This document shows, one piece after another, positions 2,490 to 28,564 of a stretch of DNA of 64,000 bases. The notes under the pieces are model-generated. The model was not told where the DNA came from. It did not search any database and saw only the letters and a list, made by a program, of their open reading frames with translations. The stretch comes from Diplonema japonicum (taxonomy: Eukaryota > Protista > Euglenozoa: Diplonemea). Position 1 is the stretch's first letter; every line of letters begins with the position of its first letter. A program made the translations under genes and the position numbers. The stretch spans positions 1 to 64,000 of the forward strand of contig OZ025743.1 in assembly GCA_964019335.1 (NCBI GenBank), in the 5' to 3' direction.

Positions 2490-2562
2490 TGCCACCACCT
2501 GGGATTGAACCAGGGACCTTCAGATCTTCGGTCTGACGCTCTCCCAACTGAGCTAAAGCGGC
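2490..2562 (-). tRNA. tRNA-Phe(GAA), with C33 instead of U33
   Basis: GCCGCTTTAGCTCAGTTGGGAGAGCGTCAGACCGAAGATCTGAAGGTCCCTGGTTCAATCCCAGGTGGTGGCA; 73 nt cloverleaf with A/B boxes and a T-run terminator. Confidence 0.95.
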
Positions 2563-2566
2563 CTAC

Positions 2567-2900
2567 TTTTTTTTTTTTAATAATAATAATAATAAATATT
2601 CCACTACCAGGCGGGAGGATCGAAGGGGAGTAGAGAAAACCATTCAAGGGAAAGGGAAAGGGACATCACTTCAAACCAAGAGAGGTGTTTGAAAGTGATT
2701 CGTGAAAAGCAGTCTCTGTTACTGAGCCATTGGTCGAGGGGTCCTGGTCCGCTGCTCCCTGTAGTAAATTACTTGGACCCCCTCACCACGCTCTTTTCAT
2801 AATAAAATAAAACCGATCCCACCCACCAGGCAGCACCTGGGTCTCGAGGCATTAGCCGCCTCTAGTAACAAGAGACGACCTCCCAGATTTTAAGAACTTT
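2567..2900 (-). mobile_element. SINE-like element S1, (TTA)n/A tail abutting the tRNA-Phe 5' flank
   Basis: Near-identical inverted copy at 26724-27045; ends CCGCCTGGTAGTGGAATATT(TAT)n; non-coding. Confidence 0.85.
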
Positions 2901-3013
2901 GGAGGAGTTTCAATTGTGAAAAATTAACCAGCTGACTGTGAAACTCCACCGTCTGCTGGACTTGTTGGGCTTTCGGGAGCCAATAAATTCAATTCAATTA
3001 AGTTTCGTTCTTC

Positions 3014-3015
<2 letters not shown>

Positions 3016-3074
<59 letters not shown>

Positions 3075-6000
3075 TTTCTCAAAATAAAGGAATTCAAATC
3101 AAGCTCGATTGTGTACACCGAAGCTTGAATCATCTGTCCTTCTTTTTTTTCTTTTTTTTTTTTTCTTTTTTCTTTCTATATGAAAGGTGAGTGAAAAATT
3201 TGAATAACACTGGGGGCGGGGGACAGGGGCCTGGTAATGGAAAATAAGGGAAGACACTGGGGAGGGAGGTGAAAAGAAAGGATAGGAGTGAAGCCAGAGT
3301 CGAGAGATTGAGTTAGAAACAATTGCTGTCTGAAGTCGTTTAACAACTTCAGACCTCAATGTTTGGAGAGTATAACATATTATAATTTATAAGTTTTTTC
3401 ACAATGTTCCCTGCCGCTCCAAGAGCTGGGCGGTCTTACAGGCGTCGGTGGACAGGAGGACTTTGAGGGAAGGAAGGGAGCTACCGAAGATCTGACTCCT
3501 TTGGTCGATCCTCTTTCCGTCTTGGCATTCCCGTAGGAGGTGGCTTAGAGTCTGGGGTTGCGAACATAGATGGCACGGGACCTCCTCGACTGGGGGTATG
3601 AGTAGGTATCCGCAAGTGAGTGGGCTCTTCCCCACCCTCAGCCTCATGATCGCCACTTCTTTCTTTCTGTCCAGCTCCTCGAACTTCTCGTAACTTCCGG
3701 CAAACTGCTCCCTGTACGTCTTTGTGACGCCAGTATCCTTCCATAGGCGGAGGTGGCTTCTGATGACATGCTTCCTCACCAGAGTTTTAACCACCTCAAT
3801 GTCTGTCTCACGGGTGTGGGCCAGTCTTTCGCTCGCCTCTTTTGCCTTCTGGTCCGCCTTCTCGTTCCACTTGTACCCGCAGTGACTCGGGACGTATTGA
3901 ACGATTAGCTTGTGGCCTCTGCCTGTCAAGCTCGCGACCTCCTGCCAGAGTTCGAAGTCATCTTTGGAGGCTGCCGACATGTGTCCCTGGCACATCTTCC
4001 GTATCACCGACTGCGAATCTGTGCATATCAGAACCATCCCTTGGCTTGCAAGCTTCCTCTCTGAGAGTCTTGTCGCCAGTCGGATCCCTAGCCTCAGGGC
4101 CCTGAGTTCGCATTTGTAGGATGTCGAATACAGTCCACCGCTGATCCCGTAGGCAGCATCGGACCCGTTGTGCAGCAGGATGGCGGCCGAGCCTCCGTTT
4201 TTCCCATCCTTTACGGACCCGTCTGTGAACACCATGCAGAATGCCCGGCCGTGTTTCTCGCATAACCTGTTCAGGGTGTTCGTTGTTGCCTCTTTCCTGA
4301 CCTCTTTTGGGTCCGTCCTTTTCACCTGCGTGTCTAGGAAGGGGGAGAGCACGAGTTGCCCCTCGAATCTTTGCCAGGGTGCAACCGCGAGTCTCCTCAT
4401 GAAGACGGCGCCCGAGTGAGGTGTGCCCGTCCTCTCTGGGAGTTTGTAGGCTTTCGATGCCTCTCTCTGTTTGTCAGACCAAGTCCTCCTTGGTAGGAGC
4501 TTCTCGTACCTGGTCAGATCCTCCAGAGGCTGAGTCGCCTGGTATGCGGCGGTGTCCACTTTTCTCATCAGTGACTCGTAGAGCAACAGGCTGTCGTGTT
4601 CGATCAGCGCATCCAGGGTCCACAGCCCCGCTTCGTTCAGTGTCGCGAATGTCTCTGATGACGCGATGCAGCCTGTGATCTTCACCGCTGCCCTGTATTG
4701 AAGCTTCTTGATGCCTTCGTGGGGCGTGTTCCTCCCGCTCGGGAGAAATGACCCGTACACGCCCAAGCAGTATCTGAAGACTGGTTGCACATATGTGAGG
4801 TATAGAGCCCTCAACACCACCTTCTTGCAACCCCATCTCGTTCCCGCAAGGCAGCTCAGCAGCCTGACCCTGCTTTCACCTCTTTCCAAGACGTCTCTGG
4901 AGTGTTCGGAGAAAAGCATGTCCTCCTCGAAGGTGACTCCGAGCAGCTTTGTTTTTTCGACCACCTCGAGTTCTTCGCCGGTCTTGAAAGTTGCTCTGAT
5001 CTTCCCCTTCAGTGTTCTCTGCGGATAGGAGATGCCAGCAACGGGAAGGAACTCTGTCTTTCCCTTGGAGATCACCATCGAGTTTCTCGAGCACCAGCTC
5101 TCCACAACCCTCAGGATCTTCATCAGTTTTCCATTCAAGCTGTCCAGGTCTTTTTCGTGCAGCACCACCGCAATGTCGTCTGCGTACATCACGGCATCAA
5201 TGACCTCCTTTTCGAACGTCTCTGAGAGGTCGTCCATGTAGATCGAGAAGAGGGTTGGGGCAAGGATGGTTCCCTGTGGAACCCCACCCGTTATGTGTTC
5301 GTGCTTCCCTGTTTCGCCACTCACCTTGACGGCAGCGATCCTCTGGTCTAGGAAAGCGGCCACCCAGTCCGTAATTCTTTGCGGGTAGCCATTACTCCTC
5401 ATTTTCGCATTTAGACCCTTGTGCCACACTGTGTCGAAGGCTCCTTTCAGGTCGAAGAGCAAAAGTCCGCCGCAGAACTCATCGTCTCTGATGCGGTTCA
5501 GTTTCGTGGTCACTTGCAGGACGTTCTCTTCTGTGGAGCGCCCTTTCCTGAAACCTGACTGCATTTTGTGCACCCTCTTCACATCTCCCACGTCTTGGTG
5601 GTAGTCGACCCTTATCTTTACTATCCTCTCCATTGTCTTTGAAATGTTGGAGGTTAGCGATATCGGTCTGTACGATGCCGGATCACTTCTTGACTTGCCC
5701 TTTCCTTTGTAAAGTGGGATTATGTGCGTGAACCTCCAGTCTGATGGTACCACTCCCTTCTCCCATGACATATTGAACAGATGGAGTAATGTGTCCATGG
5801 CCGTCCCCCCCAGGTGTTTCAGCATCTCGTTGTAGACACCGTCTGGGCCCGGGGATTTCCCCTTCTTCAACTGCCTCAGCGCGTGCTTCAGTTCCTCCAT
5901 GCTTATCCCTGGGCAAGTGACCCTGTCCCTCAAGTCCTTGATCACTTTGGACTTCCTGTTTTCACCGTCCAGCATCTTCTTTGTGTCCTTGTTAAGGTGG

Positions 6001-7631
6001 GGTGCAAAAGCCTTTGCGTAGTGCTCCACAAGGACGTCTGCTTTTTGCTTCGCCGATGTGTGTAGCTTGCCGCCTGCCATTAGTGGTGCTACTGGATCTT
6101 TGTCCTTCCTGCCATCGAGCGTTTTTATCGTCCTGAAAGCGTGTCCCAAGTCCTTTTTCTGAGACAGCTCCTTCATGTAGTCGGCCCACGCTCTTTTCTT
6201 CCCTTCATCGATCTGTTTCTGCACTTGCCTGCTGATTTCACCAAGCCTCTCGCATTGTTCTATCGATGGGATGCCGATGTCCGACATAATCTCCTTCTTC
6301 AGAGCGTTTCTTCTTCCAACCAGTTGCGTCAGCTCTTCAGTCCACCACGCTTTCCCGCCTCTCGCTCCCCCTCTTGGGATGAAGAGCCTGGCGGCCTCCT
6401 TGACTGCTTCAGTGAACTGCTTGTTTAGCCTGACCGGGTCTCCTGTTCTCTGCAGGTGCCTCAGGGTGTACTCCAGATGATTTCTGTACCCCTCCCAGTC
6501 AGCTTTTTTGAAGCTGAATTTCTTAATGGTTGGTCCGGTTTCGTATTTCGTTCTTATCCGGATGGACATGGGTATGTGGTCAGACCCCCATGAATCGAGG
6601 GTTGTCCAGGATCTAGAGTCCATGTCTGGCCCGCTTATCACCAGGTCCGGTGATGATAAGGAACCTCTTGTGTTCAATAGTGTCGGTGTGGCTTTGTCAT
6701 TCCAGGGTCGCATCCCTTTCTCGATCATCCACTTTGCGACTTTGTCACCTATGAGGTCCTCTTTCTTTCTTCTCCCGTCCCACAGAGGGTGGTGGGCGTT
6801 GAAATCCCCCATGATTAAGGTTCTGTCCCCTGTCGGGAGTGTGTTCGGGTTGAAGTAGGTGTCGATGCTCGGTCTGTCATCGCTCGGATCTGACGGCGAT
6901 GTTGGTGGAAGGTAGATGTTCACCAGGAGGATCTCCTTTTGACCTGGCGGGTATATTTTGACGTCCAGTCTTTCCGTCACGTCATTTTTCTTCTCCTTCC
7001 TTTCGACACCGCTAGCGTTGATGCCTTCTTTCACGAGAGTCAGTAAGCCGCCCCCTTTTATGGGGAAATTCCTCCTTCTCGGTCGCGTCCTGTCTCTTCG
7101 GAAAGCTCTGTACCCTTCGAACCAGCCGTGGATCGCATCGTCTGATGTTAGGTGTGTCTCTTGGAGACACAGGATGTCCGGCGCTGTTTCTTCGATAGCC
7201 TTCTCGATTTCGGCCTTCCTAGCTCTGAGGGACCTCACGTTCAGCGAGACTATCTTCAGCCATCCGTCTTTCGCGGCTGGCCCCGGGTTCTGCTCGACGT
7301 CACCGCACGCCAAGATGTCCATATCATGTGGTCCGCAACCTTTGCGCATCTTTCTCGGTGTGGTCGAGGGTCGTTTCAGCATGTATGTCACTCTGCCTTT
7401 GTGGTCACCCCTACCTTCAGGTCTTCGAAGATAGGGTTGTACGACTTGGGGGGGGCCGGCCCTAACAGACCTTACGTCGCCACCACTAACGCCTTGTCCC
7501 GTTTGGACACCCCTATACGTGCGGGGCCGGCCAGGATTTAGCCGCGAGTTGTAGCCAAGTCGTACGAGCTTCCTTCGCGCAGAGAGATGACATTGCTGTG
7601 ACCCGTTGTCGTCGTCGTCGTCGTCGTCGTG
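3016..7631 (-). mobile_element. Non-LTR retrotransposon family A (Ingi/I-group-like)
   Basis: Poly(A) tail at 3016-3077, 3' end TTTATTTTGAG(A)n, intact pol ORF, structured 5' leader starting with (GAC)n. Confidence 0.9.
3399..7391 (-). CDS. Family A polyprotein: 2A peptide - APE endonuclease - RT - RNase H - CCHC knuckle
   Basis: GDVEQNPGP; SLNVRSL, LQETH, GDFNAHH, SDH; YRPISL, QSGFR, GVPQG, YADD; FTDGS/TDS/HCG/NEKAD; CHLC..HLL.EC. First ATG at 7382. Confidence 0.95.
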   Translation of the reverse strand: MTYMLKRPSTTPRKMRKGCGPHDMDILACGDVEQNPGPAAKDGWLKIVSLNVRSLRARKAEIEKAIEETAPDILCLQETHLTSDDAIHGWFEGYRAFRRDRTRPRRRNFPIKGGGLLTLVKEGINASGVERKEKKNDVTERLDVKIYPPGQKEILLVNIYLPPTSPSDPSDDRPSIDTYFNPNTLPTGDRTLIMGDFNAHHPLWDGRRKKEDLIGDKVAKWMIEKGMRPWNDKATPTLLNTRGSLSSPDLVISGPDMDSRSWTTLDSWGSDHIPMSIRIRTKYETGPTIKKFSFKKADWEGYRNHLEYTLRHLQRTGDPVRLNKQFTEAVKEAARLFIPRGGARGGKAWWTEELTQLVGRRNALKKEIMSDIGIPSIEQCERLGEISRQVQKQIDEGKKRAWADYMKELSQKKDLGHAFRTIKTLDGRKDKDPVAPLMAGGKLHTSAKQKADVLVEHYAKAFAPHLNKDTKKMLDGENRKSKVIKDLRDRVTCPGISMEELKHALRQLKKGKSPGPDGVYNEMLKHLGGTAMDTLLHLFNMSWEKGVVPSDWRFTHIIPLYKGKGKSRSDPASYRPISLTSNISKTMERIVKIRVDYHQDVGDVKRVHKMQSGFRKGRSTEENVLQVTTKLNRIRDDEFCGGLLLFDLKGAFDTVWHKGLNAKMRSNGYPQRITDWVAAFLDQRIAAVKVSGETGKHEHITGGVPQGTILAPTLFSIYMDDLSETFEKEVIDAVMYADDIAVVLHEKDLDSLNGKLMKILRVVESWCSRNSMVISKGKTEFLPVAGISYPQRTLKGKIRATFKTGEELEVVEKTKLLGVTFEEDMLFSEHSRDVLERGESRVRLLSCLAGTRWGCKKVVLRALYLTYVQPVFRYCLGVYGSFLPSGRNTPHEGIKKLQYRAAVKITGCIASSETFATLNEAGLWTLDALIEHDSLLLYESLMRKVDTAAYQATQPLEDLTRYEKLLPRRTWSDKQREASKAYKLPERTGTPHSGAVFMRRLAVAPWQRFEGQLVLSPFLDTQVKRTDPKEVRKEATTNTLNRLCEKHGRAFCMVFTDGSVKDGKNGGSAAILLHNGSDAAYGISGGLYSTSYKCELRALRLGIRLATRLSERKLASQGMVLICTDSQSVIRKMCQGHMSAASKDDFELWQEVASLTGRGHKLIVQYVPSHCGYKWNEKADQKAKEASERLAHTRETDIEVVKTLVRKHVIRSHLRLWKDTGVTKTYREQFAGSYEKFEELDRKKEVAIMRLRVGKSPLTCGYLLIPPVEEVPCHLCSQPQTLSHLLRECQDGKRIDQRSQIFGSSLPSLKVLLSTDACKTAQLLERQGTL

Positions 7632-7884
7632 TATTATTTTTTTTTTATTTTTATATTTTTTTTTTGTTGTTTTTTTTTTTTTCTCTTGTTCTTTTATTTT
7701 CTTTATGTTTTTTTTTTTGTTTTTGTTTTTTTTTTTATGGTTTTTTTTTTTTTTTTTTTTTTTATTATTTTTTTTTTTGTAGACGAATTGGGGGGTTGGG
7801 GGCTTAATAGGGAAACACTTTCTTTTTTCTTTTTTTTTTCTTTCTTATCTATTATGGTAAAATGGAAAAAACTTATCACCTTTT

Positions 7885-9267
7885 TCACCTCTTCTTTGAT
7901 TTTCCGCCTTTCCCGGACTTCTTCGCTGTGTCCGGTGTGCTCGGTGTCGGCGATGTCGAGGTGGAGGAGGAGGTTGTCCCCTTCGAACCCTTCGAGCCCC
8001 CTGGTGCGTAGGGCGCTGCCTTCAGCGACACCTTTGCAGAGGCCCATTCCTGGCCCCTGCGCCTTCCTGGTTTTGCTCCGGCGGGAGTGTCTTCCAACTC
8101 CGTTTCCGAGCCCGAGGATGGCTGGTGTTGCTGTGGGGTGTTCGGTTCCAGCTCCGGTCCGATGAATTTGGACGGTGTCGGGGCTGTGGGTGTGGCGGTG
8201 GTTTGGGCCTTTTTGGCCTTTAGGGCCGTTCTTCTGGCGGTGTCCCTCGCGTCCCGCTCCTCCTGCTTGGCCATCATGGCACGCACCCCTTTCTCCAGAG
8301 CCTCCTGTTGACTCCTCAGCTGCTCCATCAGAGCCGGGAGGCTGGTCCTGATCTCTGCCAGACCCTCTCCCTGCTTCCGCAGCTCCTCCCCCTGCACACT
8401 TACCTGTTTCTGCAGGGGTTGGATGCTGGTCTGGACGGCTGCCAGTCCTTCCCCCTGCTTCAGCACCGCCTCCCCTTGCGCACTGACCTGTTTCTGCAGG
8501 GCCGGGTAACTGGACTGTGCTTCTGCCAGAGACGTCCTCTGTCTCTGCAGTTCCTCTCACTGCGCGGTGATCTCCTGTCTCTGCGCCGAGAGTTCGGCCC
8601 TCTGCGCCGCAACTTCTTGATGCAGATTCTGCATCTGGGCTACCATATCTGGCGAGATTGTTGCCTGTTGTTGCTGTTGTTGGGGGGGCTCCTGTGTGTT
8701 TTTTTGGGGTGTGGCGGTCCTCTTCCTCCACTCTTCTACTGCCTTGCAGTAGAGCTGCCACCCTACCGACCGGCCGTAGAATTCCAGAAATTCTTCTGGG
8801 CTGTACCTGTCTTGGTGGACTTTTGTTCTTTTTTTTTTTTCTTCCCCCTTCCTCGACCACTTCTTCCCTCCTGCAGCCCTGGACTCCAGGGGGTCGGCCA
8901 CCTTTATCGCCGGCAGGACTTCTGCCGTGGCGCCGTTCACCTTGATGCAGGTGTGGTGGGGGGGGGTGCGTGCGGTGTAGAGGAGGAAGGACGCGCCTTC
9001 CGTCGTCAGGATGACGACCTTCTCGGTCTGCTCTGAGACCGTTGCTGCGAGAATCGCAGCTGCGCCCTTCTCCTCCACTCCCTTCGGCAGCGGACCGATG
9101 ATCCAGTTGCCCTTCCGCACCTCGTCCTTTTTCTCCTTCTTCTTCTCTTCTTCTTCTTCGAATACCAGATTTAACTCTGGCATCGCCGCGGCGTCTTCGT
9201 CCACCTGCATCTGCAGGCTGTCCAGTGGGGGCCTCGTGGAGGCGTCCGCGCTGGTCTGCTGATCCAT
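7885..9267 (-). pseudogene. ORF1-like coiled-coil protein with one in-frame TGA (8557-8559)
   Basis: ORFs 8557-9267 and 7885-8466 are in the same frame. The TGA sits where repeats read QGE. Heptad-like repeats, basic C-terminus, directly upstream of family A pol. Confidence 0.55.
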
Positions 9268-9319
9268 TTTTATAAATTTTTATTAAAATTTATTATGTGA
9301 TAGTGTATCAGACCCCCCA

Positions 9320-9322
<3 letters not shown>

Positions 9323-9352
<30 letters not shown>

Positions 9353-11518
9353 CAAAATACCAATGCAGGGCCGCCATGGAGAGCAACACCTGAGAAAAGG
9401 GAAAAAAAAAGGTGAAGGGAAACCATGGGGAAATAGGGAGGGCAATGGACCAGGCTTCTGCAAGCAGGAGGAGCCCTGGTCCCCCACCAACCCGTGCTCT
9501 GCTTTGGGACAGCCGAAGAGGGCTGAATTACATTATTCCCTCAGTCAAGTGAGAGAAAAACGGGGGCCTACCTTCCAGCTGGATGTCCTTCTTTGGCTGG
9601 AACCTCCGGCGGAAAGCCCCCCAGGGAGGTATTGCTCCTATTGAGCGAATCATTGGTGAGTGTGAAAATAAAAAAAAGGGGAAATGGGAAACAGTGAGAG
9701 GAAGGGAAAGGAAAGTGGAAAACACAACATTCCATTTAACACACACACACGGGGCGATCCCTTAGCGCAGCACGGGGGCCGCGGGACCGGCGTCAAGAGA
9801 GACCGGAGGAGGGGGCGGCACGTTTGAAGGTGCAGTGACGTCTGTAGACGCCAGGGATGATGGCGAGGTGAACAGTCCGGAGCGTGACCAGGCGAGCAGG
9901 CCAGACTCAACAATGAGGTCGTAGATCTGGGTCACGCGTCTCGACAGGGAGAAGGCTAGGGAGGGAGTACCAGCAGGAGTGTCGATCGCCCCCTTCCCGA
10001 TCACAGGGCACCCACCGACAACATGCTCCCTGGACATCGGTGCTGCGTGGCAGGCTGGGCACCGGAGCACACCCTTGTGCTTCCTGTTCGGGCCAGCAGT
10101 CTGCAGGAAGCCGAAGAAGAGAGCCGAGTGACCAATCCGCAGCCGCGAGATGACCGTTTCAGCTTGTCTGGGGAAGCCAAGGGGGAAGTGCGCGGACCGA
10201 AGCTCGGTCGCCACCGCGTAGTTGTGGGCGAGGGATGTTATGAGCTCCGCGGACCTCCGCACCACCCACCGTCGCACCAGGGCCCTCACTGATCGGTAGT
10301 CAAGGGAGGGCCTGTCCTGCTTCCGCTTCGTTCCCTCCACGGCCAGAGCGTCAGCCTTCTCGTTCCCGTCCACCCCACAGTGGGAGGGCACAAACTGGAG
10401 GACCACCGGTGTCCCCTGCGTGCGCGCCGCGGACACCAGCCGGCTCCACGTCTGGTGGTCGAGCTTCTCCCTCTGTCGCGTTGGGCCAGCTCGCAGCTGC
10501 TCGACGAGGGAGAGGGAGTCGGTGCAGATCGACAGCGGGGACTTCGCCAGCGAAGGGTGTGTTTTTCGGAGGGTAGCCACCATATCCAGCGCCGTTTTCA
10601 CAGCCATGCCCTCTGCCCGAAAAGATGAACAGAAGTCGTTGACGCCATGGCACACAGACACAGGGGTCAGGGGGGGAGGCAGCTGCAGATAAACCCCAGA
10701 GCCACCTTTCGCCTTCTGTCCGACCTGTACAACCGAGCCATCCGTGTAGGCATGGATGCCCGGGGGGAGAGCCGCAAGAGCAGCCTCGGCCGCCTTCCGC
10801 CTGTCCGCGTCTGGCGACGATCGCGTGACCCCGCCGGGGAGGTCAGTCCTGAAGTCGACCATGCCTGTCTGCCACGGGGCCGCCAGGGGCGTAGCCGACA
10901 GGTACTCGAAGTGCACCTTTGGTTCCAACCCGCATCGACGCAGTGCTTGGTAGCCAGAGCGCAGCCACCCACACCCCAGCCTGTTCGCCTGCTTCAGCTT
11001 GACCGTCTCCCTGTGAACCGGGGAAGACTGCCAGCAGAAGGCCTTCGCCGTCATCGTCGCCGCAGCACCCTCCGCCATTCTTTCGAGGGGAAGCAGTCCT
11101 GCCTCAGCTAGGAGCTTGTACCCTCCGGAGCCACTCCAGCAGCCCGTGATCAGCACCGCCGCCTCCTGGTGAAGCCCAGCCAGGTCCTTCCTCCCGACAT
11201 CATCGAGCCTGCTGTAGTAGACCCCCATGCAGTAGCGCAGCAGCGGGAGGATGTACGTAACGTAGAGAGACCGCAGAGTGTCCCTCTTGCTGCCCCAGGA
11301 CGTGCCGGACAAGAGCTTCAGCACCCTCAGCCTTTTGCTGGCCCGCCGTAGGATGTCCTGTGCGTGTTCACCGAACGTGAGCCCAGAGTCCACCGTAACC
11401 CCAAGGTACCTCGCGTGTTCAGACAGAGGCAGGGGACGGGCCGCAACGTAATCCACGTCGGGCCGTCGCACGGCTGCATGCATGTCCCGCACGCAGCGGA
11501 TCCGCACACCACCCGCCT
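9323..11518 (-). mobile_element. 5'-truncated LINE family B copy
   Basis: Protein identical to the C-terminal part of 22181-26287; same 3' UTR; poly(A) at 9323-9352. Confidence 0.95.
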
Positions 11519-11531
11519 ACTTTTTTTTTTT

Positions 11532-13209: not shown

Positions 13210-13240
<31 letters not shown>

Positions 13241-18184: not shown

Positions 18185-18215
<31 letters not shown>

Positions 18216-18474
18216 ACTCACACGCAAATGGGCCAAGAAACAACACAGGGAAGGCCGGGGGGGCGCAGGGCGCAGCAAGAGAACGCCCCTGCGTTCAGCC
18301 TCGAGGGGACCGCCCCGAATGTAATCAGCCAGGTCGGCTGTCCCAGGAAGGGGGAACGGAGCACCGAAGGGAAGGTTCAGCCCACGTGGTGGCCCTCTCG
18401 GTTACTCCAGACAAAAGACTGGACACACCCCACACCCCTCCCCCCACCCCCAGTTCCCCCCAGTGGTTATTATT

Positions 18475-18512
<38 letters not shown>
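17812..18512 (+). mobile_element. Heavily 5'-truncated LINE family C copy (~700 bp)
   Basis: Near-identical to the reverse complement of 12909-13618; poly(A) at 18477-18512. Confidence 0.92.
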
Positions 18513-18514
<2 letters not shown>

Positions 18515-19121: not shown

Positions 19122-19149
19122 GTGATCAGGAAAAGAAAAGAAAAGAAAA

Positions 19150-22011
19150 ATGGGCAAGAAGAAAGACAAGCACAAGGAGAAGGCAAAGCCGGAAGGGAAC
19201 GGGGCCAGCACGCAGCTGGCGCAGTCCAAGGCCAGGGAGGAGCGGCGGGTGGAGAGGATGCTCCGCAGCGCGGGAGCAGCCGGGGAGCTGGGGCAGCTCC
19301 TGACGCCGGAGCACCGGGAGAAGATGACGGGGGTGGTCACCGTGATTGACCTCCTCACGCCCGACGCCGCCGCCGCTACAGCCGGCCCAGCGACACCTGT
19401 CGCCTCCACCCCGACCGGCTCCGTCAAAAGGCCGGTTTCGCCTGACGCCAGCGTCGCCACCCCGACCTCCAGCAAGAAAGCTAGGAGGAAGGCCGCCAGA
19501 GCCGCGCGCGCTGACGCTGCCGCCGAAGCCGCACACATAGCTGACGCCACACACCCCCTCGAAGCCGCACGCACTGCGGCCGACGTCGAACTCGCGGGAA
19601 TCGCTGCTGATTTGGAAGCTGCACGCGAGTCGGCCGACGTGGTAGCTGCAGAAATAGCAGCTAAGATGAAGGCTGCGCAGGAGGTGGCTGATGCTGCGGT
19701 TGTCAAAATGGCAGCCGAGACGGAAGCTGCACGCGTGGCTGGTGTGGAGGCTGCTCGCAGAGCAGTCGAGGCTGAGGAGAAGGCTCTGCGCGAGCGGTCT
19801 ACTGCACGACTTGCGGCAGAGGAGAAGGAGGCTGCGCGTGCTGCGGCCGAGATGAAAGCAGCCGAGGAGAAGAAGGCTACAGCCGCAGCCGCTGCAGCCG
19901 AGAAGAAGAAAGCCGCAGCCGCCGCCGCCGCCGAGAAGAAAGCAGCAGCCGCCGCCGCCGCCGAGGAGAAGGCCGCCGCCGAGAAGAAAGCAGCAGCCGC
20001 CGCCGCCGCCGCCGAGAGGAAGGCCGCAGCCGACGCCGCCAGGAAGAAAGCTGCAGCCGCCGCCGCCGCCGCCGAGAAGGAGACCGCAGCCGCAGCCGCC
20101 GCCGCCGAGGAGAAGAAGAAGGTCGCAGCCACCGCCGCCGCCGAAAAGGAAGCCGCCGCAGCCGCTGCCAAAAAGGAGGAAGCTTTGAGGTTGGCGGCCG
20201 CCAAGAAGGCAGATGCCCAGAAGGTCGAGGACGAAGCAGTCGCGAACGCTTCCGCCAACGCGTCAACAGACCAAGGCACGCTCCTCCTCAGCTCAGACTC
20301 TGACACCAGCTCTGGCCCTGAGGAGATGGAGGACGACCCTGCCCCTGCCCCTTCCACAACCCCGCGATGGGACCTGGTGCCAGACACACGGGACGCCCCG
20401 ATCTACACCAACGTGTCCCCCCCGACGGAAACATCCCGCGCTGTCATTGCGCTCGACGATCCCTCCGAAATGGGGGTCGTGTGCTCCGCGTTACCTACGG
20501 CATCCATCACCTTTGTCCTTATGACAGAGGTCCCCGGTGTCACCACCCCCAGCGAGATTGTCATGGTCTCTGGGTCGCGCGCAGTGAACAGGAGGGTCCA
20601 CGTCTCCACGTTCGGGCTGGACCCCCCCACCTACACCCCGCCTTCCACCTTCAACAGCGGATCGGAGGTCGTCTACGTCTGTGTCAGTGCAGACAGCCTG
20701 AAGGAGGCGAAGGCCAGGGTCCTGGAGCTCGCCAAGGCTCAGGGCGCGGTGGTGGAGGATCGTGCGGTCTTCCGCCCAAGGAAGTTCGGTGAGGAGGAAC
20801 CGCGGGCGAGGCACTGGACCCACGAGGTGGGACTGCGCCTGCAAGCAGCACACGTCCACGCCGTCCTGCGCCGGTCCGGGGACGGCTGCTTAATGCGGAC
20901 GACGGAGAGACGCGGGGGGTACGCTTATGTACCCATCGTGGCGGAAGGGAGGGCGGATGCCTTTCGGATTGCGGGGACGCTGGGTGGGTTGTCTCTCGGG
21001 GTGGCGCACCGTAAGGGATGGACTGTGCGGTGCCTACCGGAGACGGAACAGCGGCTCCGGGAAACCCTCGCAAAACTGCGTACAAAGCGCAAGTTTTTGC
21101 TCACCGGGGCCCCGCCGTCCATCACCAGGGCGGCCTTCGACGAAGTGATGGACCACATCGGTTGGAAACCATCCTCCGTCCTGCGACGCACGCAGACGAT
21201 GTTCCAGGGCACGAGGCAACTCGTGTTCTTCATCGTCGTCGACAGCCCGCCCCCGAAGTCCAGGACGTGGCTCCTTGGGGGGCGCCTTGTCTGCCTCCGT
21301 GATGCGGACGACCACCCGACCGTCAAGCCGCCCCCTCTCATCAACAGGACGACACCTGCATCTGCACCTGCGCTTGCAACGTCCTCGACCCCGGCACCCA
21401 CATCTTCTCATGTACCTGCACCTGCGCCTACACCTGTACCTGACCCGGCACCTGTATCGGCGTCTACACCCTCGGGGACTGGCCCTGCGGTGAAAGCAAC
21501 TGGGCTTCCTCCCACCAGCCCGTGGGCGTCCATACCGAGCTCGGTGGCTCCCCCCCAGCTCGACACTGTGACGTCCCCTACACCGCCCCGCAACGTGTCT
21601 GCGGGAAACAAGGAGGGGGTCCCTTCCGGGTCGCCTGAGGTCGCCGCTCTCACTGAGCTCGTCGCCACGCTGAAGGAGTCGATCGTCGGGCTGCAGAGGA
21701 CGATCGACTCTCAGCAGGAGATGATCTCCGATCTGCGGACGACGCTCCGCCTCCTCCTGCCGCAGGCGGCCACGCTGACGACGGGAACGGCAGTGCCGCG
21801 GGACCCTACACCGGGGGCGACGACGACACACGACAGTGTCTGGAAAGGGAAGGGGAAGGGGAAGAAGGGGGCTCCTCCTCTCGCTACGACCTCTGAGGCT
21901 GCGGTGACGAACCTGGGTACGAGGGGGCGGGCCAGGTCGTTCGCGGAGACCAAAGATCTCTTCACCAATGGGGTCAAGGGGCGCTCTGCCTCCATGGGTC
22001 CATCCAATTGA
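19150..22011 (+). CDS. Family B ORF1 protein (basic N-terminus, Ala/Glu/Lys coiled coil, central globular region, Pro-rich linker, C-terminal coiled coil)
   Basis: 953-aa ORF directly upstream of pol; AAAAEKK repeats. Confidence 0.8.
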   Translation: MGKKKDKHKEKAKPEGNGASTQLAQSKAREERRVERMLRSAGAAGELGQLLTPEHREKMTGVVTVIDLLTPDAAAATAGPATPVASTPTGSVKRPVSPDASVATPTSSKKARRKAARAARADAAAEAAHIADATHPLEAARTAADVELAGIAADLEAARESADVVAAEIAAKMKAAQEVADAAVVKMAAETEAARVAGVEAARRAVEAEEKALRERSTARLAAEEKEAARAAAEMKAAEEKKATAAAAAAEKKKAAAAAAAEKKAAAAAAAEEKAAAEKKAAAAAAAAERKAAADAARKKAAAAAAAAEKETAAAAAAAEEKKKVAATAAAEKEAAAAAAKKEEALRLAAAKKADAQKVEDEAVANASANASTDQGTLLLSSDSDTSSGPEEMEDDPAPAPSTTPRWDLVPDTRDAPIYTNVSPPTETSRAVIALDDPSEMGVVCSALPTASITFVLMTEVPGVTTPSEIVMVSGSRAVNRRVHVSTFGLDPPTYTPPSTFNSGSEVVYVCVSADSLKEAKARVLELAKAQGAVVEDRAVFRPRKFGEEEPRARHWTHEVGLRLQAAHVHAVLRRSGDGCLMRTTERRGGYAYVPIVAEGRADAFRIAGTLGGLSLGVAHRKGWTVRCLPETEQRLRETLAKLRTKRKFLLTGAPPSITRAAFDEVMDHIGWKPSSVLRRTQTMFQGTRQLVFFIVVDSPPPKSRTWLLGGRLVCLRDADDHPTVKPPPLINRTTPASAPALATSSTPAPTSSHVPAPAPTPVPDPAPVSASTPSGTGPAVKATGLPPTSPWASIPSSVAPPQLDTVTSPTPPRNVSAGNKEGVPSGSPEVAALTELVATLKESIVGLQRTIDSQQEMISDLRTTLRLLLPQAATLTTGTAVPRDPTPGATTTHDSVWKGKGKGKKGAPPLATTSEAAVTNLGTRGRARSFAETKDLFTNGVKGRSASMGPSN

Positions 22012-22152
22012 AGGGGCCCCGCAGAACAGGGGGGGCAGCAGATCTACGACCATGCTCCCTCTCCTAGTCTCCCTCGCATCCTCCCCAGGAGACTCCTACC
22101 TCTCTGTTTCTTCACCGACTTTTCTGCACTGATCCCCACCCTACTCGGGAGG

Positions 22153-25100
22153 ATGTCCGTCAGGGACCTGCTGGGGCTGCTTGGGCTGGTCGAAACAAAC
22201 CCTGGCCCACCCAAGAAGCTGCCGCCCCCGTCGCCTAAGGGTCTCAAGGGTTCTCAACGTTGCGAAATGGACCGTCGTATCTCGCCATGCTGACTTCTTG
22301 TCGCTGGACATCATCATGATACAGGAGACGCACCTGAGGGAAGGGCACGACACGCCACACCTGCCTGGGTACAGGTCATACAGGAGGGATCGGTTGACAC
22401 CGGTGACTGACGGCACTGCGACGAGGGGTGGTGGTATTGTCACGTATGTCCGCGACGATCTTGCCTCGGAGGAGGTTCCGCACGTACTCCCGGCTGGGGA
22501 CTGTGTCACTGAGAGACTGGATGTGAGGATCTCCTGCGAGAAGCGTGAGCCGATCACTCTCTCCAACGTTTACCTTACACCGGTAAGCGCGAGCAGAGGC
22601 ACGAGGGACCCTGAGTACCTGCGGCCTGGCAGCCTTCCCATGGGGAAGAACACAGTCATAGCGGGTGACTTCAATGCTCACCACAGCTCCTGGGACGCCA
22701 CGGTGACGACGCCGAACGAGAGGGGGAACGTGGTCAGGGACTGGCTGGACACCCACGGGTACTCCGTCTACAACGACCGCAACGAACCGACGAGGGACTC
22801 GTCACGACACGTTCTGGACCTGGTTGTGGGGCGCTGCGCGAAGCTTGAGCCGAAGACGCTGGGCACGTGGGGCTCCGATCATAGTCCCGTATCCTTTCAC
22901 CTGCCTCTTGAGGACGTCTACCGTTCGGAGCGCCCCTTCCCCACCTGGAATTTCAAAAAAGCCAGATGGGATGACTACACTGCTGCTGTTGCCCGCCTGC
23001 TTGCTGGTGTTGACACGGCGGCTCCGATTGACTCTGTCACGAAGGGGTTTACACAAGCCCTTTTGACTGCGGCGAACGACCACATTCCCCTCTGTGGGAT
23101 GCGACGTGGCCCGACCCCCTGGTGGACTGCTGAGCTCGAGGACGCCTTCGAAGAGCGGAACACCCTGCGCGAACTCCTGCTCCAAGAGGCTGACGTGGTG
23201 GTGGAGGAGTACAGGGCGAAGGTGAAAGAAGTCAACCGACTTCTTGACGAGACGAAGCGTGAGGCATGGGGAAGGATGGCGGCCGACCTCAGCCGGAGCA
23301 AGGACCTCGGGGCTGCGTTCAGAGCGGTGAAGAAGCTGGACGGCAGGCACCGAAAGACACACCTTCCTGTACTCGAGGGAAGATTTGTGTCGGACAAGGC
23401 GAAGGCCGACCGGCTGGGGGCGCACTTCGCTAAGCTCTACGGCAGGCGTGGTGACGGGAACTCGAAGGACGCCGCTCCTTCTGCAAGCAGACTCGGGTGT
23501 CAAGCGTTCACCGTGGACGACCTCACCCGCGGCCTGAGAAGGATGAAGACGCGCAGCGCGGCCGGGGAAGACGGAATCTTCTCGGAGATGCTCCTACACC
23601 TGAACTCGGACTCCCTCGGTGTCCTCCTTCTACTCCTCAATCGCTCCTGGCTGATGGGTGTCGTCCCCGGCGCCTGGAAGAAGGGAGTGATCGTCCCGGT
23701 ACCGAAACCTGGAAAAGATGCGACTCTCTTGGCTTCCTACCGGCCGATCTGCCTGACCAGCTGCCTCTGCAAGCTGCTGGAGAGGATGATCGAGGAGAGG
23801 CTCACGTTTCTTCTTGACGCGGACGGGACGGGAGTCGAGGGACTCCACGACAGCCAGGCTGGTTTCAGACGCGGCCGCTCCACGGAGGAGCAGGTGGCAA
23901 CCCTCACTGAGTGCATGTCGAGGAACAAAGACGATCGACGTCTCTCGGCCGCTCTGCTGTTCGACTTCTCTTCTGCCTTCGACCTGGTGCCCCATGGTGC
24001 CCTGCTGGACAAGATGCGAGGGAAGGGTCTCCCCGAACCCTTCGTGGAGTGGACGCGGTCCTTTCTATGCGGCCGTACTGCTGCGGTCACGATTGGACGG
24101 TCGAGGGGGTCGACGACGAAGGTGCGACGGGGTGTCCCCCAGGGCTCTGTCTTGGGTCCCATCCTGTACACCATCTACGTCGACGAACTCGCCAGGAGAC
24201 TGGAGGGACTGGCGGACGTCTCGGTGCTCTACGCCGACGACGTGGCGGTCGTGATCTCCTCTGGACAAGGGGACGTGGCTGGGCTGGAGCGGAAGGCGCA
24301 GGCAGTGGTGGATGCGGTTGAGGACTGGTGCAGGGAGCGTGACATGCTGCTGAGCACGTCCAAGACGCAGGCAGTCTGCGTCCCCCCCCAGAAACGTCTC
24401 GGGGTCTACTTCACTTCGTCACGAGTCCCCCTTCAGCCAGGTGCCTTCCAGAACCCACTCTTCGGCCTGGGGGTGAACGCCGATGGCACGATCTCCGGGG
24501 ACCAGGAGCTGGCGGGCCTTCAGGTTGTGGAGGCGGGTGGTGTGCGGATCCGCTGCGTGCGGGACATGCATGCAGCCGTGCGACGGCCCGACGTGGATTA
24601 CGTTGCGGCCCGTCCCCTGCCTCTGTCTGAACACGCGAGGTACCTTGGGGTTACGGTGGACTCTGGGCTCACGTTCGGTGAACACGCACAGGACATCCTA
24701 CGGCGGGCCAGCAAAAGGCTGAGGGTGCTGAAGCTCTTGTCCGGCACGTCCTGGGGCAGCAAGAGGGACACTCTGCGGTCTCTCTACGTTACGTACATCC
24801 TCCCGCTGCTGCGCTACTGCATGGGGGTCTACTACAGCAGGCTCGATGATGTCGGGAGGAAGGACCTGGCTGGGCTTCACCAGGAGGCGGCGGTGCTGAT
24901 CACGGGCTGCTGGAGTGGCTCCGGAGGGTACAAGCTCCTAGCTGAGGCAGGACTGCTTCCCCTCGAAAGAATGGCGGAGGGTGCTGCGGCGACGATGACG
25001 GCGAAGGCCTTCTGCTGGCAGTCTTCCCCGGTTCACAGGGAGACGGTCAAGCTGAAGCAGGCGAACAGGCTGGGGTGTGGGTGGCTGCGCTCTGGCTACC

Positions 25101-26287
25101 AAGCACTGCGTCGATGCGGGTTGGAACCAAAGGTGCACTTCGAGTACCTGTCGGCTACGCCCCTGGCGGCCCCGTGGCAGACAGGCATGGTCGACTTCAG
25201 GACTGACCTCCCCGGCGGGGTCACGCGATCGTCGCCAGACGCGGACAGGCGGAAGGCGGCCGAGGCTGCTCTTGCGGCTCTCCCCCCGGGCATCCATGCC
25301 TACACGGATGGCTCGGTTGTACAGGTCGGACAGAAGGCGAAAGGTGGCTCTGGGGTTTATCTGCAGCTGCCTCCCCCCCTGACCCCTGTGTCTGTGTGCC
25401 ATGGCGTCAACGACTTCTGTTCATCTTTTCGGGCAGAGGGCATGGCTGTGAAAACGGCGCTGGATATGGTGGCTACCCTCCGAAAAACACACCCTTCGCT
25501 GGCGAAGTCCCCGCTGTCGATCTGCACCGACTCCCTCTCCCTCGTCGAGCAGCTGCGAGCTGGCCCAACGCGACAGAGGGAGAAGCTCGACCACCAGACG
25601 TGGAGCCGGCTGGTGTCCGCGGCGCGCACGCAGGGGACACCGGTGGTCCTCCAGTTTGTGCCCTCCCACTGTGGGGTGGACGGGAACGAGAAGGCTGACG
25701 CTCTGGCCGTGGAGGGAACGAAGCGGAAGCAGGACAGGCCCTCCCTTGACTACCGATCAGTGAGGGCCCTGGTGCGACGGTGGGTGGTGCGGAGGTCCGC
25801 GGAGCTCATAACATCCCTCGCCCACAACTACGCGGTGGCGACCGAGCTTCGGTCCGCGCACTTCCCCCTTGGCTTCCCCAGACAAGCTGAAACGGTCATC
25901 TCGCGGCTGCGGATTGGTCACTCGGCTCTCTTCTTCGGCTTCCTGCAGACTGCTGGCCCGAACAGGAAGCACAAGGGTGTGCTCCGGTGCCCAGCCTGCC
26001 ACGCAGCACCGATGTCCAGGGAGCATGTTGTCGGTGGGTGCCCTGTGATCGGGAAGGGGGCGATCGACACTCCTGCTGGTACTCCCTCCCTAGCCTTCTC
26101 CCTGTCGAGACGCGTGACCCAGATCTACGACCTCATTGTTGAGTCTGGCCTGCTCGCCTGGTCACGCTCCGGACTGTTCACCTCGCCATCATCCCTGGCG
26201 TCTACAGACGTCACTGCACCTTCAAACGTGCCGCCCCCTCCTCCGGTCTCTCTTGACGCCGGTCCCGCGGCCCCCGTGCTGCGCTAA
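22153..26287 (+). CDS. Family B pol: 2A-like peptide, APE, RT with insertion, RNase H, CCHC; frame-disrupted near 22248
   Basis: GLVETNPGP in the ORF1 frame (ATG 22153). IQETH, GDFNAHH, SDH, YADD, YTDGS and CPAC..HVV..C lie in the 22181-26287 frame. Confidence 0.88.
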
Positions 26288-26723
26288 GGGATCGCCCCGT
26301 GTGTGTGTGTTAAATGGAATGTTGTGTTTTCCACTTTCCTTTCCCTTCCTCTCACTGTTTCCCATTTCCCCTTTTTTTTATTTTCACACTCACCAATGAT
26401 TCGCTCAATAGGAGCAATACCTCCCTGGGGGGCTTTCCGCCGGAGGTTCCAGCCAAAGAAGGACATCCAGCTGGAAGGTAGGCCCCCGTTTTTCTCTCAC
26501 TTGACTGAGGGAATAATGTAATTCAGCCCTCTTCGGCTGTCCCAAAGCAGAGCACGGGTTGGTGGGGGACCAGGGCTCCTCCTGCTTGCAGAAGCCTGGT
26601 CCATTGCCCTCCCTATTTCCCCATGGTTTCCCTTCACCTTTTTTTTTCCCTTTTCTCAGGTGTTGCTCTCCATGGCGGCCCTGCATTGGTATTTTGAAAA
26701 AAAAAAAAAAAAAAAAAAAAAAA

Positions 26724-27045
26724 GTTCTTAAAGTTCTTAAAGTCTGGGAGGTCGTCTCTTGTTACTAGAGGCGGCTAATGCCTCGAGACCCAGGTGCTGC
26801 CTGGTGGGTGGGATCGGTTTTATTTTATTATGAAAAGAGCGTGGTGAGGGGGTCCAAGTAATTTACAACAGGGAGCAGCGGACCAGGACCCCTCGACCAA
26901 TGGCTCAGTAACAGAGACTGCTTTTCACGAATCACTTTCAAACACCTCTCTTGGTTTGAAGTGATGTCCCATTCCCTTTGGTTTTCTCTACTCCCCTTCG
27001 ATCCTCCCGCCTGGTAGTGGAATATTTATTATTATTATTATTATT
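26724..27045 (+). mobile_element. SINE-like element S1, second copy
   Basis: Near-identical to the reverse complement of 2579-2900; duplicated AAAGTTCTT at the 5' end. Confidence 0.88.
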
Positions 27046-27060
27046 AAAAAAACAAAAAAG

Positions 27061-28482
27061 GATGGCTCGGTTGGCTCGGTTGTACAGGTCGGACAGAAGG
27101 CGAAAGGTGGCTCTGGGGTTTATCTGCAGCTGCCTCCCCCCCTGACCCCTGTGTCTGTGTGCCATGGCGTCAACGACTTCTGTTCATCTTTTCGGGCAGA
27201 GGGCATGGCTGTGAAAACGGCGCTGGATATGGTGGCTACCCTCCGAAAAACACACCCTTCGCTGGCGAAGTCCCCGCTGTCGATCTGCACCGACTCCCTC
27301 TCCCTCGTCGAGCAGCTGCGAGCTGGCCCAACGCGACAGAGGGAGAAGCTCGACCACCAGACGTGGAGCCGGCTGGTGTCCGCGGCGCGCACGCAGGGGA
27401 CACCGGTGGTCCTCCAGTTTGTGCCCTCCCACTGTGGGGTGGACGGGAACGAGAAGGCTGACGCTCTGGCCGTGGAGGGAACGAAGCGGAAGCAGGACAG
27501 GCCCTCCCTTGACTACCGATCAGTGAGGGCCCTGGTGCGACGGTGGGTGGTGCGGAGGTCCGCGGAGCTCATAACATCCCTCGCCCACAACTACGCGGTG
27601 GCGACCGAGCTTCGGTCCGCGCACTTCCCCCTTGGCTTCCCCAGACAAGCTGAAACGGTCATCTCGCGGCTGCGGATTGGTCACTCGGCTCTCTTCTTCG
27701 GCTTCCTGCAGACTGCTGGCCCGAACAGGAAGCACAAGGGTGTGCTCCGGTGCCCAGCCTGCCACGCAGCACCGATGTCCAGGGAGCATGTTGTCGGTGG
27801 GTGCCCTGTGATCGGGAAGGGGGCGATCGACACTCCTGCTGGTACTCCCTCCCTAGCCTTCTCCCTGTCGAGACGCGTGACCCAGATCTACGACCTCATT
27901 GTTGAGTCTGGCCTGCTCGCCTGGTCACGCTCCGGACTGTTCACCTCGCCATCATCCCTGGCGTCTACAGACGTCACTGCACCTTCAAACGTGCCGCCCC
28001 CTCCTCCGGTCTCTCTTGACGCCGGTCCCGCGGCCCCCGTGCTGCGCTAAGGGATCGCCCCGTGTGTGTGTGTTAAATGGAATGTTGTGTTTTCCACTTT
28101 CCTTTCCCTTCCTCTCACTGTTTCCCATTTCCCCTTTTTTTTATTTTCACACTCACCAATGATTCGCTCAATAGGAGCAATACCTCCCTGGGGGGCTTTC
28201 CGCCGGAGGTTCCAGCCAAAGAAGGACATCCAGCTGGAAGGTAGGCCCCCGTTTTTCTCTCACTTGACTGAGGGAATAATGTAATTCAGCCCTCTTCGGC
28301 TGTCCCAAAGCAGAGCACGGGTTGGTGGGGGACCAGGGCTCCTCCTGCTTGCAGAAGCCTGGTCCTTTGCCCTCCCTATTTCCCCATGGTTTCCCTTCAC
28401 CTTTTTATTTTCCCTTTTCTCAGGTGTTGCTCTCCATGGCGGCCCTGCATTGGTATTTTGAAAAAAAAAAAAAAAAAAAAAA
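27061..28482 (+). mobile_element. 5'-truncated LINE family B copy abutting tRNA-Arg, with target-site duplication
   Basis: Near-identical to 25306-26720; flanked by AACAAAAAAG at 27051-27060 and 28481-28490; 9-nt duplication at the 5' junction. Confidence 0.95.
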
Positions 28483-28491
28483 CAAAAAAGT

Positions 28492-28564
28492 GCCCCGTTG
28501 GCGCAATGGATAGCGCGTTGGGTTCCGAATCCAAAGGTTGCGGGTTCAAGTCCCGCACGGGGTT
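28492..28564 (+). tRNA. tRNA-Arg(CCG)
   Basis: GCCCCGTTGGCGCAATGGATAGCGCGTTGGGTTCCGAATCCAAAGGTTGCGGGTTCAAGTCCCGCACGGGGTT; cloverleaf with anticodon CCG and a T-run terminator. Confidence 0.95.

Follow-up and report, generated by a model that had tools for sequence, protein, structure and literature searches.

Why do the 25.9 kb that separate two divergent tRNA genes of the diplonemid Diplonema japonicum consist of retroelements that run, on either half, towards the nearer tRNA gene? The question is raised by a stretch of 64,000 nucleotides (assembly GCA_964019335.1, contig OZ025743.1, positions 1 to 64,000; hereafter the window), in which tRNA-Phe on the minus strand and tRNA-Arg on the plus strand flank two opposed stacks of retroelements without long terminal repeats (non-LTR elements), 13.6 kb and 12.3 kb in length. 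The analysis reported here supports the reading that these are position-specific non-LTR retrotransposons of D. japonicum which stack serially at tRNA starts, the site being read, as we infer, through the RNA polymerase III (Pol III) complex; a probability of about 85% is assigned to this reading.

Targeting of tRNA genes by retrotransposons is textbook "safe-haven" integration, for which the basis so far has been budding yeast and dictyostelid amoebae. Diplonemids, which belong to Discoba, count among the most numerous heterotrophic flagellates of the sea. Full-text searches of the literature yielded no account of retrotransposons targeted to tRNAs in diplonemids or elsewhere in Euglenozoa, and none of tRNA targeting by the trypanosomatid ingi/L1Tc elements. 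The genome note of D. japonicum YPF1604, which describes an assembly from PacBio HiFi and Hi-C data with a quality value (QV) of 59.4, mentions neither transposons nor nuclear tRNA genes (PMC13598402).

Results

Retroelement tails end a few nucleotides upstream of tRNA genes

In the window, the proximal tail of the Phe stack stops 4 nt (GTAG) short of tRNA-Phe +1 (...A12 GTAG/GCCGC, the slash preceding +1) and that of the Arg stack 2 nt (GT) short of tRNA-Arg +1 (...A22CAAAAAA GT/GCCCC), both inside the ~10 nt given in the original prediction, which had been made from the letters of the window alone. Elsewhere in the window (1-2489 and 28566-64000, 37 kb) there are ~100 runs of A or T of 12-48 nt each, and blastn and tblastn gave no match there to any array element, so that an A/T-rich flank free of such insertions, as first described, was confirmed.

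For the genome-wide analysis, the whole genome was searched with the Rfam tRNA model, and the best 63 of ~1600 candidates, located on many contigs, were taken with 2 kb on both sides. A tRNA gene was counted as occupied when the tail of a long interspersed nuclear element (LINE; lineages A, B, B2 and C) or of a non-autonomous element ended 1-16 nt upstream of +1. Occupation was found for 23 of the 63 sampled genes (~37%), every tail being in the orientation of the tRNA, and for 6 of 15 further distinct tRNAs lying within the sampled flanks. The distances between tail and +1 ranged from 1 to 16 nt, with a main mode at 4-6 nt and a second mode at 12-13 nt, and at ~60 junctions the tail faced +1 on the strand of the tRNA without exception.

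The 3' ends of the LINEs gave the same picture among the matches listed for each family. Eighteen of 38 LINE B ends outside the window lay within ~1-13 nt of a same-strand tRNA detected by ARAGORN, and two more of the 38 abutted tRNA 5' fragments; 11 of 24 evaluated LINE C ends directly adjoined a tRNA, with one additional tRNA-fragment junction, and 9 of 24 LINE A ends did so, three more being probable cases in which the fetched piece starts inside the tRNA. Direct abutment was thereby found for roughly 40-50% of the sampled LINE A, B and C 3' ends, and even with 1600 tRNA genes, the chance that a random end would lie, correctly oriented, in the 20 nt upstream of one is <3e-4. Of the ends that are not adjacent, most adjoin another element, at its 5' end or at an internal break, and several belong, by their coordinates, to stacks that terminate at a tRNA (C61:19689 to 15450 to a tRNA at 12968; C52:107410 through a full LINE A to a tRNA at 100636). 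The tRNA targeting proposed for the three LINE families named at the outset thus held beyond the window and withstood the refuting test that had been set with it.

At least 18 tRNA species are targeted, and their 5' ends and spacers are mutually unrelated. At the 40 empty sites the native upstream layout is retained, with an AT-rich box at -30..-21, a GC block at -18..-15 and an A at -1. Among eight sampled 5S genes, one, a dispersed copy (L229, G000:C52:247051-247130), has the tail of a LINE B ending 8 nt before its first base. No LINE tail was found upstream of the sampled U6 (0/6) and 7SL (0/6) genes, and the U2 gene in the window has no LINE insertion.

LINE 5' ends were also seen 67-82 nt downstream of some tRNAs. 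They were considered as a second, TRE3-like target and rejected, the junctions being heterogeneous; such ends fit stacks filling the spacers of tRNA clusters (~45-120 nt, three measured) upstream of the next tRNA.

Two further observations concern the small RNA genes. At G000:C109:9467-10016, a LINE C tail is followed by tRNA-Asp and, 127 nt on and on the same strand, by a U6 small nuclear RNA gene; a linkage of U6 with tRNA genes, as in kinetoplastids, is possible. At G000:C36:575493-587194, eight partial 7SL matches (model positions 98-250), exactly 1650 nt apart, lie beside a complete 7SL gene and represent a tandem array with a 7SL fragment.

Copies of the tRNA start lie between stacked elements

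Analysis of the junctions between stacked elements showed that they carry copies of the region -12..+7 of the local tRNA, rarely extending up to +45. The target-site duplications are 9-13 nt long. In the Phe stack of the window the order is A36-CGGAAATGTAGGCCGC-(LINE C) and A11-GTAGGC-(LINE B), and in the Arg stack AAAAACAAAAAAG flanks the proximal LINE B (27060-28489) on both sides. Duplications at other loci include TACCTCAAACAT (-12..0), GCATCGGTCG (-5..+5), TTCCGAGCCCACC (-6..+7), TCGTAGCCCGT (-5..+6) and another covering -4..+5, and the longer ones extend to tRNA +16, +39 and +45. In all cases the intact tRNA gene is the right-hand copy of the duplication.

Because these duplications lie between the stacked elements, they prove that integration took place repeatedly at a single site and that every newcomer came to lie next to the tRNA, and the proposed outward displacement of older copies by insertions at the tRNA start is substantiated. 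The extents of the duplications place the first nick at roughly -4..-16, on the opposite strand to the tRNA, and the second ~9-13 nt downstream, often within the coding region of the tRNA. Many duplications begin with A runs, so a native A-rich patch or the tail of a previous element probably helps priming, and occupied sites would be self-reinforcing. A third copy of GTAGGCCG, at 16296-16304, was considered as a target-site duplication and rejected as a chance 9-mer, since it lies inside a contiguously aligning LINE B2 3' untranslated region (UTR).

Two opposed stacks of four LINE lineages and their dependants

The array comprises ~14 pieces, which belong to four LINE lineages (A, B, B2 and C) and three non-autonomous families (S2, S4 and S5). 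The at least 12 head-to-tail retroelements described between the two tRNAs are real, whereas the three LINE families to which they had been assigned became four related lineages. The pieces, with the kind of evidence in brackets where recorded, are as follows.

2490-2562, minus strand: tRNA-Phe(GAA), anchor of the minus-strand stack (ARAGORN; Rfam, 56.8 bits)
2563-2566, minus strand: native tRNA-Phe -4..-1, GTAG (sequence)
2567-9321, minus strand: full-length LINE A, 6.75 kb (Pfam; recurrent 5' end)
9323-11514, minus strand: 5'-truncated LINE B with A30 tail at 9323-9352, 100% identical to 24531-26723
11515-11520, minus strand: left target-site copy GTAGGC, equal to tRNA-Phe -4..+2, between the S2 tail and the LINE B 5' end
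11521-12864, minus strand: non-autonomous S2, ~1.3 kb, without any open reading frame (ORF) with a Pfam match
12909-16092, minus strand: 5'-truncated LINE C with A17 tail at 12909-12925 (Pfam)
16093-16108, minus strand: left target-site copy CGGAAATGTAGGCCGC, matching tRNA-Phe from about -11 to +5 (sequence)
16109-16164, minus strand: LINE B stub, extremely 5'-truncated, with A36 after the 20 nt that are left of it; oldest element of the Phe stack and the farthest from the tRNA
16165-16767, plus strand: LINE B2 3'UTR fragment without a tail of its own, outermost piece of the Arg stack
16768-17811, plus strand: non-autonomous S4, related to S2 across ~110 nt
17812-18512, plus strand: 5'-truncated LINE C fragment with A36 tail at 18477-18512 (repeat search, blastn)
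18513-18632, plus strand: short A21-tailed piece (blastn, sequence)
18633-19122, plus strand: non-autonomous S5 with the 3' end ...CCGCCTGGTAGTGGAATAA(TTA)nTTGC A8, common to LINE A
19124-26723, plus strand: full-length LINE B, 7.6 kb, with A27 tail at 26697-26723 (Pfam; transcript match)
26724-27059, plus strand: 5'-truncated LINE A 3' end (formerly "S1"), followed by AAAAACAAAAAAG, which is repeated just before tRNA-Arg
27060-28489, plus strand: 5'-truncated LINE B, 99.7% identical to 25305-26723, youngest and proximal to tRNA-Arg
28492-28565, plus strand: tRNA-Arg(CCG), anchor of the plus-strand stack (ARAGORN; Rfam, 65.5 bits)

Self-comparison of the window showed that families common to the left and right halves occur there in inverted orientation only. 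All pieces to the left are on the minus strand and all to the right on the plus strand, as had been stated; the switch lies at 16164/16165, not between 16296 and 16620, as 16165-16767 is a plus-strand LINE B2 3'UTR. Among the array ORFs, the Pfam domains Exo_endo_phos, RVT_1 and RNase_H were found on the minus strand at 3399-7391, 9762-11507 and 13284-15935 and on the plus strand at 22181-26287 and 27151-28050; all three domains are present in LINE A and LINE B, and RVT_1 with RNase_H in the truncated LINE C. Of the native sequence upstream of tRNA-Phe, the oldest copy to be preserved is CGGAAATGTAGGCCGC at 16093-16108, and the terminal AAAAAAGTG at ~19115-19123, after S5, matches tRNA-Arg -8..+1.

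The repeat search and blastn further revealed an inverted pair of 2193 nt (9326-11518 and 24531-26723), 100% identical and 13 kb apart. Local re-insertion or gene conversion is indicated by this LINE B pair, which could also mediate inversion. Short-read Logan contigs covering 25800-29500 (4 runs) break at every poly(A) and include no bridging record and no empty-site allele; they neither support nor contradict the contiguity of the array.

The autonomous LINEs encode ORF1 and an APE-RT-RNase H polyprotein

LINE A opens with the 5' end GGTGGGGGGTCTGATAC, which recurs at three other loci (L041, L067, L089). Its ORF1 (9267-7846) encodes 473 aa in intact copies, as judged by comparison with the copy at L022, and is interrupted by an in-frame TGA at 8557-8559 in the window copy only. 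An A-rich spacer (7637-7840) separates it from ORF2 (7382-3399), in which a 2A-like DVEQNPGP (7301-7278) is followed by an apurinic/apyrimidinic-type endonuclease (APE), a reverse transcriptase (RT) and RNase H. The tail consists of A12 and (TTA)n (2567-2596), and the 3'UTR, which is ~830 nt long and contains two A tracts (3016-3077 and 3143-3171), reaches 3398. The SINE-like "S1" (given as 2567-3015 or 2567-2900), 3016-3140 and the sequence from 3143 onward had been regarded as separate elements. That division was abandoned in favour of a single LINE A: at six other loci (L102-L105, L034, L052) the 3'UTR runs contiguously through both A tracts into "S1", giving contiguity in at least six other copies, and ends there with ...CCGCCTGGTAGTGGAATA(TTA)nA(n).

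LINE B has an ORF1 (19150-22011) of 953 aa with an Ala/Glu/Lys-rich coiled-coil region, for which nothing was found in Pfam or the ESM Atlas, and an ORF2 running from the ATG at 22153 to 26287, with a 2A-like LVETNPGP followed by APE, RT and RNase H. The ESM Atlas returned only generic APE-RT-RNH clusters for ORF2, and the window copy differs from the expressed transcript P0121 by a frame-shifting indel near 22249-22260. The 2A-like motifs stand directly before APE in both lineages, as ILACGDVEQNPGP in LINE A (7278-7301, minus strand) and LLGLVETNPGP in LINE B (22153-22209, plus strand), and a LINE relative from D. ambulator has the 2A-like GDVEPNPGP. LINE B2 is a relative of LINE B, with ~72% identity in ORF2, and its window fragment at 16165-16767 aligns at 95-98% to tRNA-adjacent B2 copies in L021, L040, L041 and L056. 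The window copy of LINE C (12909-16092) has the 3' end ...CCCCAGTGGTTATTATTGC, and its ORF (13284-15935) encodes RT and RNase H together with a Cys-His motif.

Upstream of tRNA-Val at L019 (G000:C19), a LINE C-like copy, ~77% identical, has its ORF stop 13 nt before the tRNA and neither 3'UTR nor poly(A); it has undergone a deletion or belongs to an older lineage whose 3' end is minimal. At L070 (G000:C51), downstream of a LINE B tail, the next stacked LINE opens with the spliced leader ...CGATTCTAAAGCTACAGTTTCTGTACTTTATTG before its 5'UTR and ORF1, and at L214 (G000:C44:64497-64652) a LINE likewise opens with the host spliced leader, partly duplicated. A spliced leader at the 5' end of a LINE implies copying from a trans-spliced mRNA, and this is how at least one further LINE family is copied.

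The non-autonomous elements S2, S4 and S5 are 0.5-1.3 kb long and have only their 3' ends in common with the LINEs. S2 ends with a tail of the LINE A/C type, ...CAGTGGTACATTTA(TTA)n A11, contains a 200-nt internal duplication, and adjoins tRNAs at other loci (L021, L030). The window copy of S4 lacks the terminal ~55 nt and the tail, both of which are present in L059. Nothing tRNA-, 5S- or 7SL-like was detected inside S2, S4 or S5 by ARAGORN and Rfam. As they combine the absence of a Pol III-gene-like head with 3' ends common to LINEs alone, they are best classified as non-autonomous LINE dependants and not as classical short interspersed nuclear elements (SINEs).

The LINEs form one diplonemid clade and are recently active

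Pairwise identity is 41% between B and C and 31% between A and B as well as A and C. In the RT tree, the lineages fall into one supported clade (98/99) together with D. ambulator and Rhynchopus euleeides transcripts and nine environmental proteins, with LINE A as sister to the D. ambulator sequence (100/100). On this phylogeny, A, B, B2 and C are lineages of one diplonemid-specific APE-RT-RNase H clade, so that of the proposed multi-family APE-LINE system the domain assignment stood and the separate families did not. The closest relatives (P0167, P0169 and P0172) are encoded on environmental contigs of 9-22 kb, and the closest named relatives are diplonemid transcripts. No trypanosomatid or Dictyostelium protein was among the best LINE protein matches, in a reference set without named LINE clades (ingi, I, Tad1).

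A D. japonicum transcript (EukProt) matches LINE B ORF2 with 100% identity, by which the trypanosome frame first adopted for the host was replaced by a diplonemid one; the closest proteins of a conserved kinase encoded in the window are also diplonemid. Relatives of LINE C are present in the transcriptome as well. The LINE copies are mutually 93-100% identical, many above 97%, and in short-read contigs from several independent studies the depth of LINE sequences is hundreds of times that of unique flank, which serves as a rough guide only. The LINEs have been recently active and are expressed.

Surroundings of the array

Inverted repeats of ~43 nt (1858-1900 and 2421-2463) surround ~520 nt and end 27 nt downstream of tRNA-Phe; the pair could be a small foldback or terminal-inverted-repeat element. 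Beside tRNA-Arg, 29139-32423 on the minus strand holds an ORF of 1094 aa with an NAD:arginine ADP-ribosyltransferase (ART) and a long ankyrin array, the repeats of which are encoded by 102-nt tandem units. From 29139 to 63957, large ORFs lie on the minus strand (9 of the 17 listed ORFs of at least 200 aa) and include a PDZ protein, a MOK-like kinase and a GAF-GAF phosphodiesterase. The spacers of this cluster are rich in A/T homopolymers, and the retroelement stacks lie at the end of the one-directional cluster.

Discussion

A model for serial insertion at tRNA starts

In the mechanism that we propose, the elements involved are the autonomous LINEs A, B, B2 and C, all of which have an ORF1 and open ORF2 with a 2A-like peptide, and the non-autonomous elements, which have the LINE 3'-terminal motifs only and ride along. 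The insertion site would be read not from the DNA sequence but from the Pol III initiation complex on genes with internal promoters, that is, from transcription factors IIIB and IIIC (TFIIIB, TFIIIC) and Pol III. A new element takes the orientation of the tRNA with its poly(A) facing +1, and the second nick, ~9-13 nt downstream of the first, often falls inside the tRNA. The 5' side of the element then keeps a duplicate of the tRNA upstream region and first bases, and the gene remains intact. Each insertion reuses the same site and displaces older copies outward, and divergent tRNA genes in consequence grow opposed stacks. Restriction to internal-promoter genes, a fixed distance and polarity, and the lack of a motif are what tethering to TFIIIB, TFIIIC or Pol III predicts, and tethering to the Pol III machinery is an established mechanism for TRE5-A and Ty3 (PMC3159450, PMC5911963).

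Several points weigh against this account. Contact of the LINEs with the Pol III initiation complex we infer from position and polarity. Between the Phe and Arg stacks no native spacer remains, and two pieces, 16165-16767 and S4 (16768-17811), lack their 3' ends; deletion or recombination has therefore also reshaped the array. The samples cover the best 63 of ~1600 tRNA candidates and at most 40 listed matches for each LINE, and a stack ending at a tRNA was established only for those copies for which the coordinates of earlier matches sufficed. A metagenome scan with an ORF2 profile recovered 80 loci at 21-35% identity with no tRNA in their short flanks; most of these contigs end at the LINE, which makes the scan uninformative on tRNA adjacency.

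Alternatives to the proposed reading

The endonuclease or ribonucleoprotein might instead recognise the DNA itself, without contact to a Pol III factor, the cue being the AT-rich box at -30..-21, the GC block at -18..-15, the A-rich patch at -13..-7, or a melted or R-loop start site. The loose upstream architecture common to the 40 empty sites would suit this, as would the A runs with which duplications often begin, an A/T priming preference being likely, and the freedom from insertions of U6 and 7SL genes, whose upstream regions differ. Yet at least 18 tRNA species and a 5S gene are hit although their spacers and 5' sequences show no relationship, the first insertion moves the native -30..-15 region kilobases away while the site continues to be reused, and the ~100 long A/T runs nearby are untouched, all of which makes direct recognition of DNA improbable. 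Random or A-tract-biased insertion, with selection in a gene-dense genome sparing only the copies beside tRNAs, makes use of the fact that tRNA flanks are plausible safe havens. It cannot yield a window of 1-16 nt, an orientation bias of 100% or duplications containing tRNA +1..+7, and copies that are 97-100% identical are too young for such purging; we regard it as extremely unlikely. Hardly any weight, likewise, is given to an artefact or passenger effect, in which the tRNA was co-mobilised by 3' transduction or the repeats were mis-assembled. The 100% identical 2.2-kb inverted copies inside the array and the short-read contigs that stop at every poly(A), bridging nothing, would be compatible with it. 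However, the poly(A) precedes the tRNA instead of following it, every locus has its own junction spacer, tail length and downstream flank, empty paralogous tRNA genes retain their native upstream DNA, and the pattern occurs on dozens of contigs of a HiFi and Hi-C assembly with a QV of 59.

A different possibility, rather unlikely, is that element and tRNA gene are functionally coupled beyond safe-haven parking, in a LINE life cycle that is tethered to Pol III and processed by RNase P. The 3' end of the LINE, which is AT-rich (TATTTTG-A(n) or (TTA)n-A(n)), would come to lie ~15-40 nt upstream of +1, where the tail would overlap the position of the displaced native AT-rich box (-30..-21) and could keep the tRNA gene transcribed. 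If RNase P then cut read-through LINE transcripts at +1, their 3' end would be defined and would carry a poly(A) encoded in the genome, and the LINE RNA would need no polyadenylation signal of its own.

Relation to known tRNA-targeting elements

Insertion next to tRNA genes, as described here, has its closest known counterpart in NLTR-A of Dictyostelium purpureum, which the relevant section of PMC5006619 (Spaller et al. 2016) describes as a non-LTR element with RNase H after RT, inserted 2-6 bp upstream of tRNA genes. The diplonemid LINEs likewise have RNase H downstream of RT and a main distance mode of 4-6 nt; the likeness lies in domain order and insertion position, the host of NLTR-A is amoebozoan, and that section reports a single family (PMC5006619). 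Stacks, non-autonomous partners, 5S insertions and duplications into the tRNA are features of the diplonemid LINEs that are not among the points made on NLTR-A in the same section of PMC5006619.

For D. discoideum, the passages on tRNA targeting in PMC3159450, PMC5391098 and PMC5006619 place TRE5 ~48-50 bp upstream and TRE3 ~100 bp downstream of tRNA genes, give 61% of tRNA genes as occupied, state that TRE5-A can use the 5S gene and report an experimentally demonstrated contact between TRE5-A ORF1p and TFIIIB. According to these passages, the TREs have in common with the diplonemid LINEs an APE, internal-promoter Pol III genes as targets, a fixed orientation and a compact host genome, and they differ in lacking RNase H and belonging to another clade (PMC3159450, PMC5391098, PMC5006619). 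Against the 61% given for D. discoideum stand ~37% in the diplonemid sample. In general terms, the diplonemid LINEs resemble Pol III gene-targeting non-LTR elements in having APE and RT, no LTRs, an A-rich tail, a narrow distance and duplications, and depart from TRE5 (44-54 bp upstream, no RNase H) with a distance of 1-16 nt and the presence of RNase H. Ty3 of yeast and DGLT-A of dictyostelids, as portrayed in the sections of PMC5911963 and PMC5006619 that deal with them, similarly integrate at or within ~15 bp of the Pol III start, also at 5S genes, but are LTR elements that use an integrase and not target-primed reverse transcription, with no poly(A) and no 5' truncation.

Within Euglenozoa, ingi/L1Tc with their partners RIME/NARTc have in common with the diplonemid LINEs the APE-RT-RNase H order, a 2A-like NPGP and non-autonomous partners; they have Pr77 as their 5' hallmark and a single ORF, where the diplonemid LINEs have two (PMC1874656, PMC3708506). 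The 2A-like peptide is known from ingi/L1Tc and other APE LINEs (PMC3708506).

Implications

Under the reading proposed here, D. japonicum would provide a third, independent case of safe-haven targeting of tRNA genes, in Discoba, which involves a whole LINE clade together with its dependants. Its scale is considerable, with about a third of the sampled tRNA genes occupied and stacks of up to 13 kb per tRNA. A precision like that of Ty3 would be reached through target-primed reverse transcription, and a second nick inside the tRNA would spare the gene. Such LINEs are also relevant where insertion tools are sought among LINEs with a natural site specificity. Paradiplonema papillatum, a relative of the culturable D. 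japonicum, is transformable, and positioning of a LINE endonuclease by the Pol III machinery becomes a testable question in a culturable protist. For annotation and for genome evolution, tRNA loci in these genomes would have to be regarded as sinks for transposable elements and as substrates for recombination.

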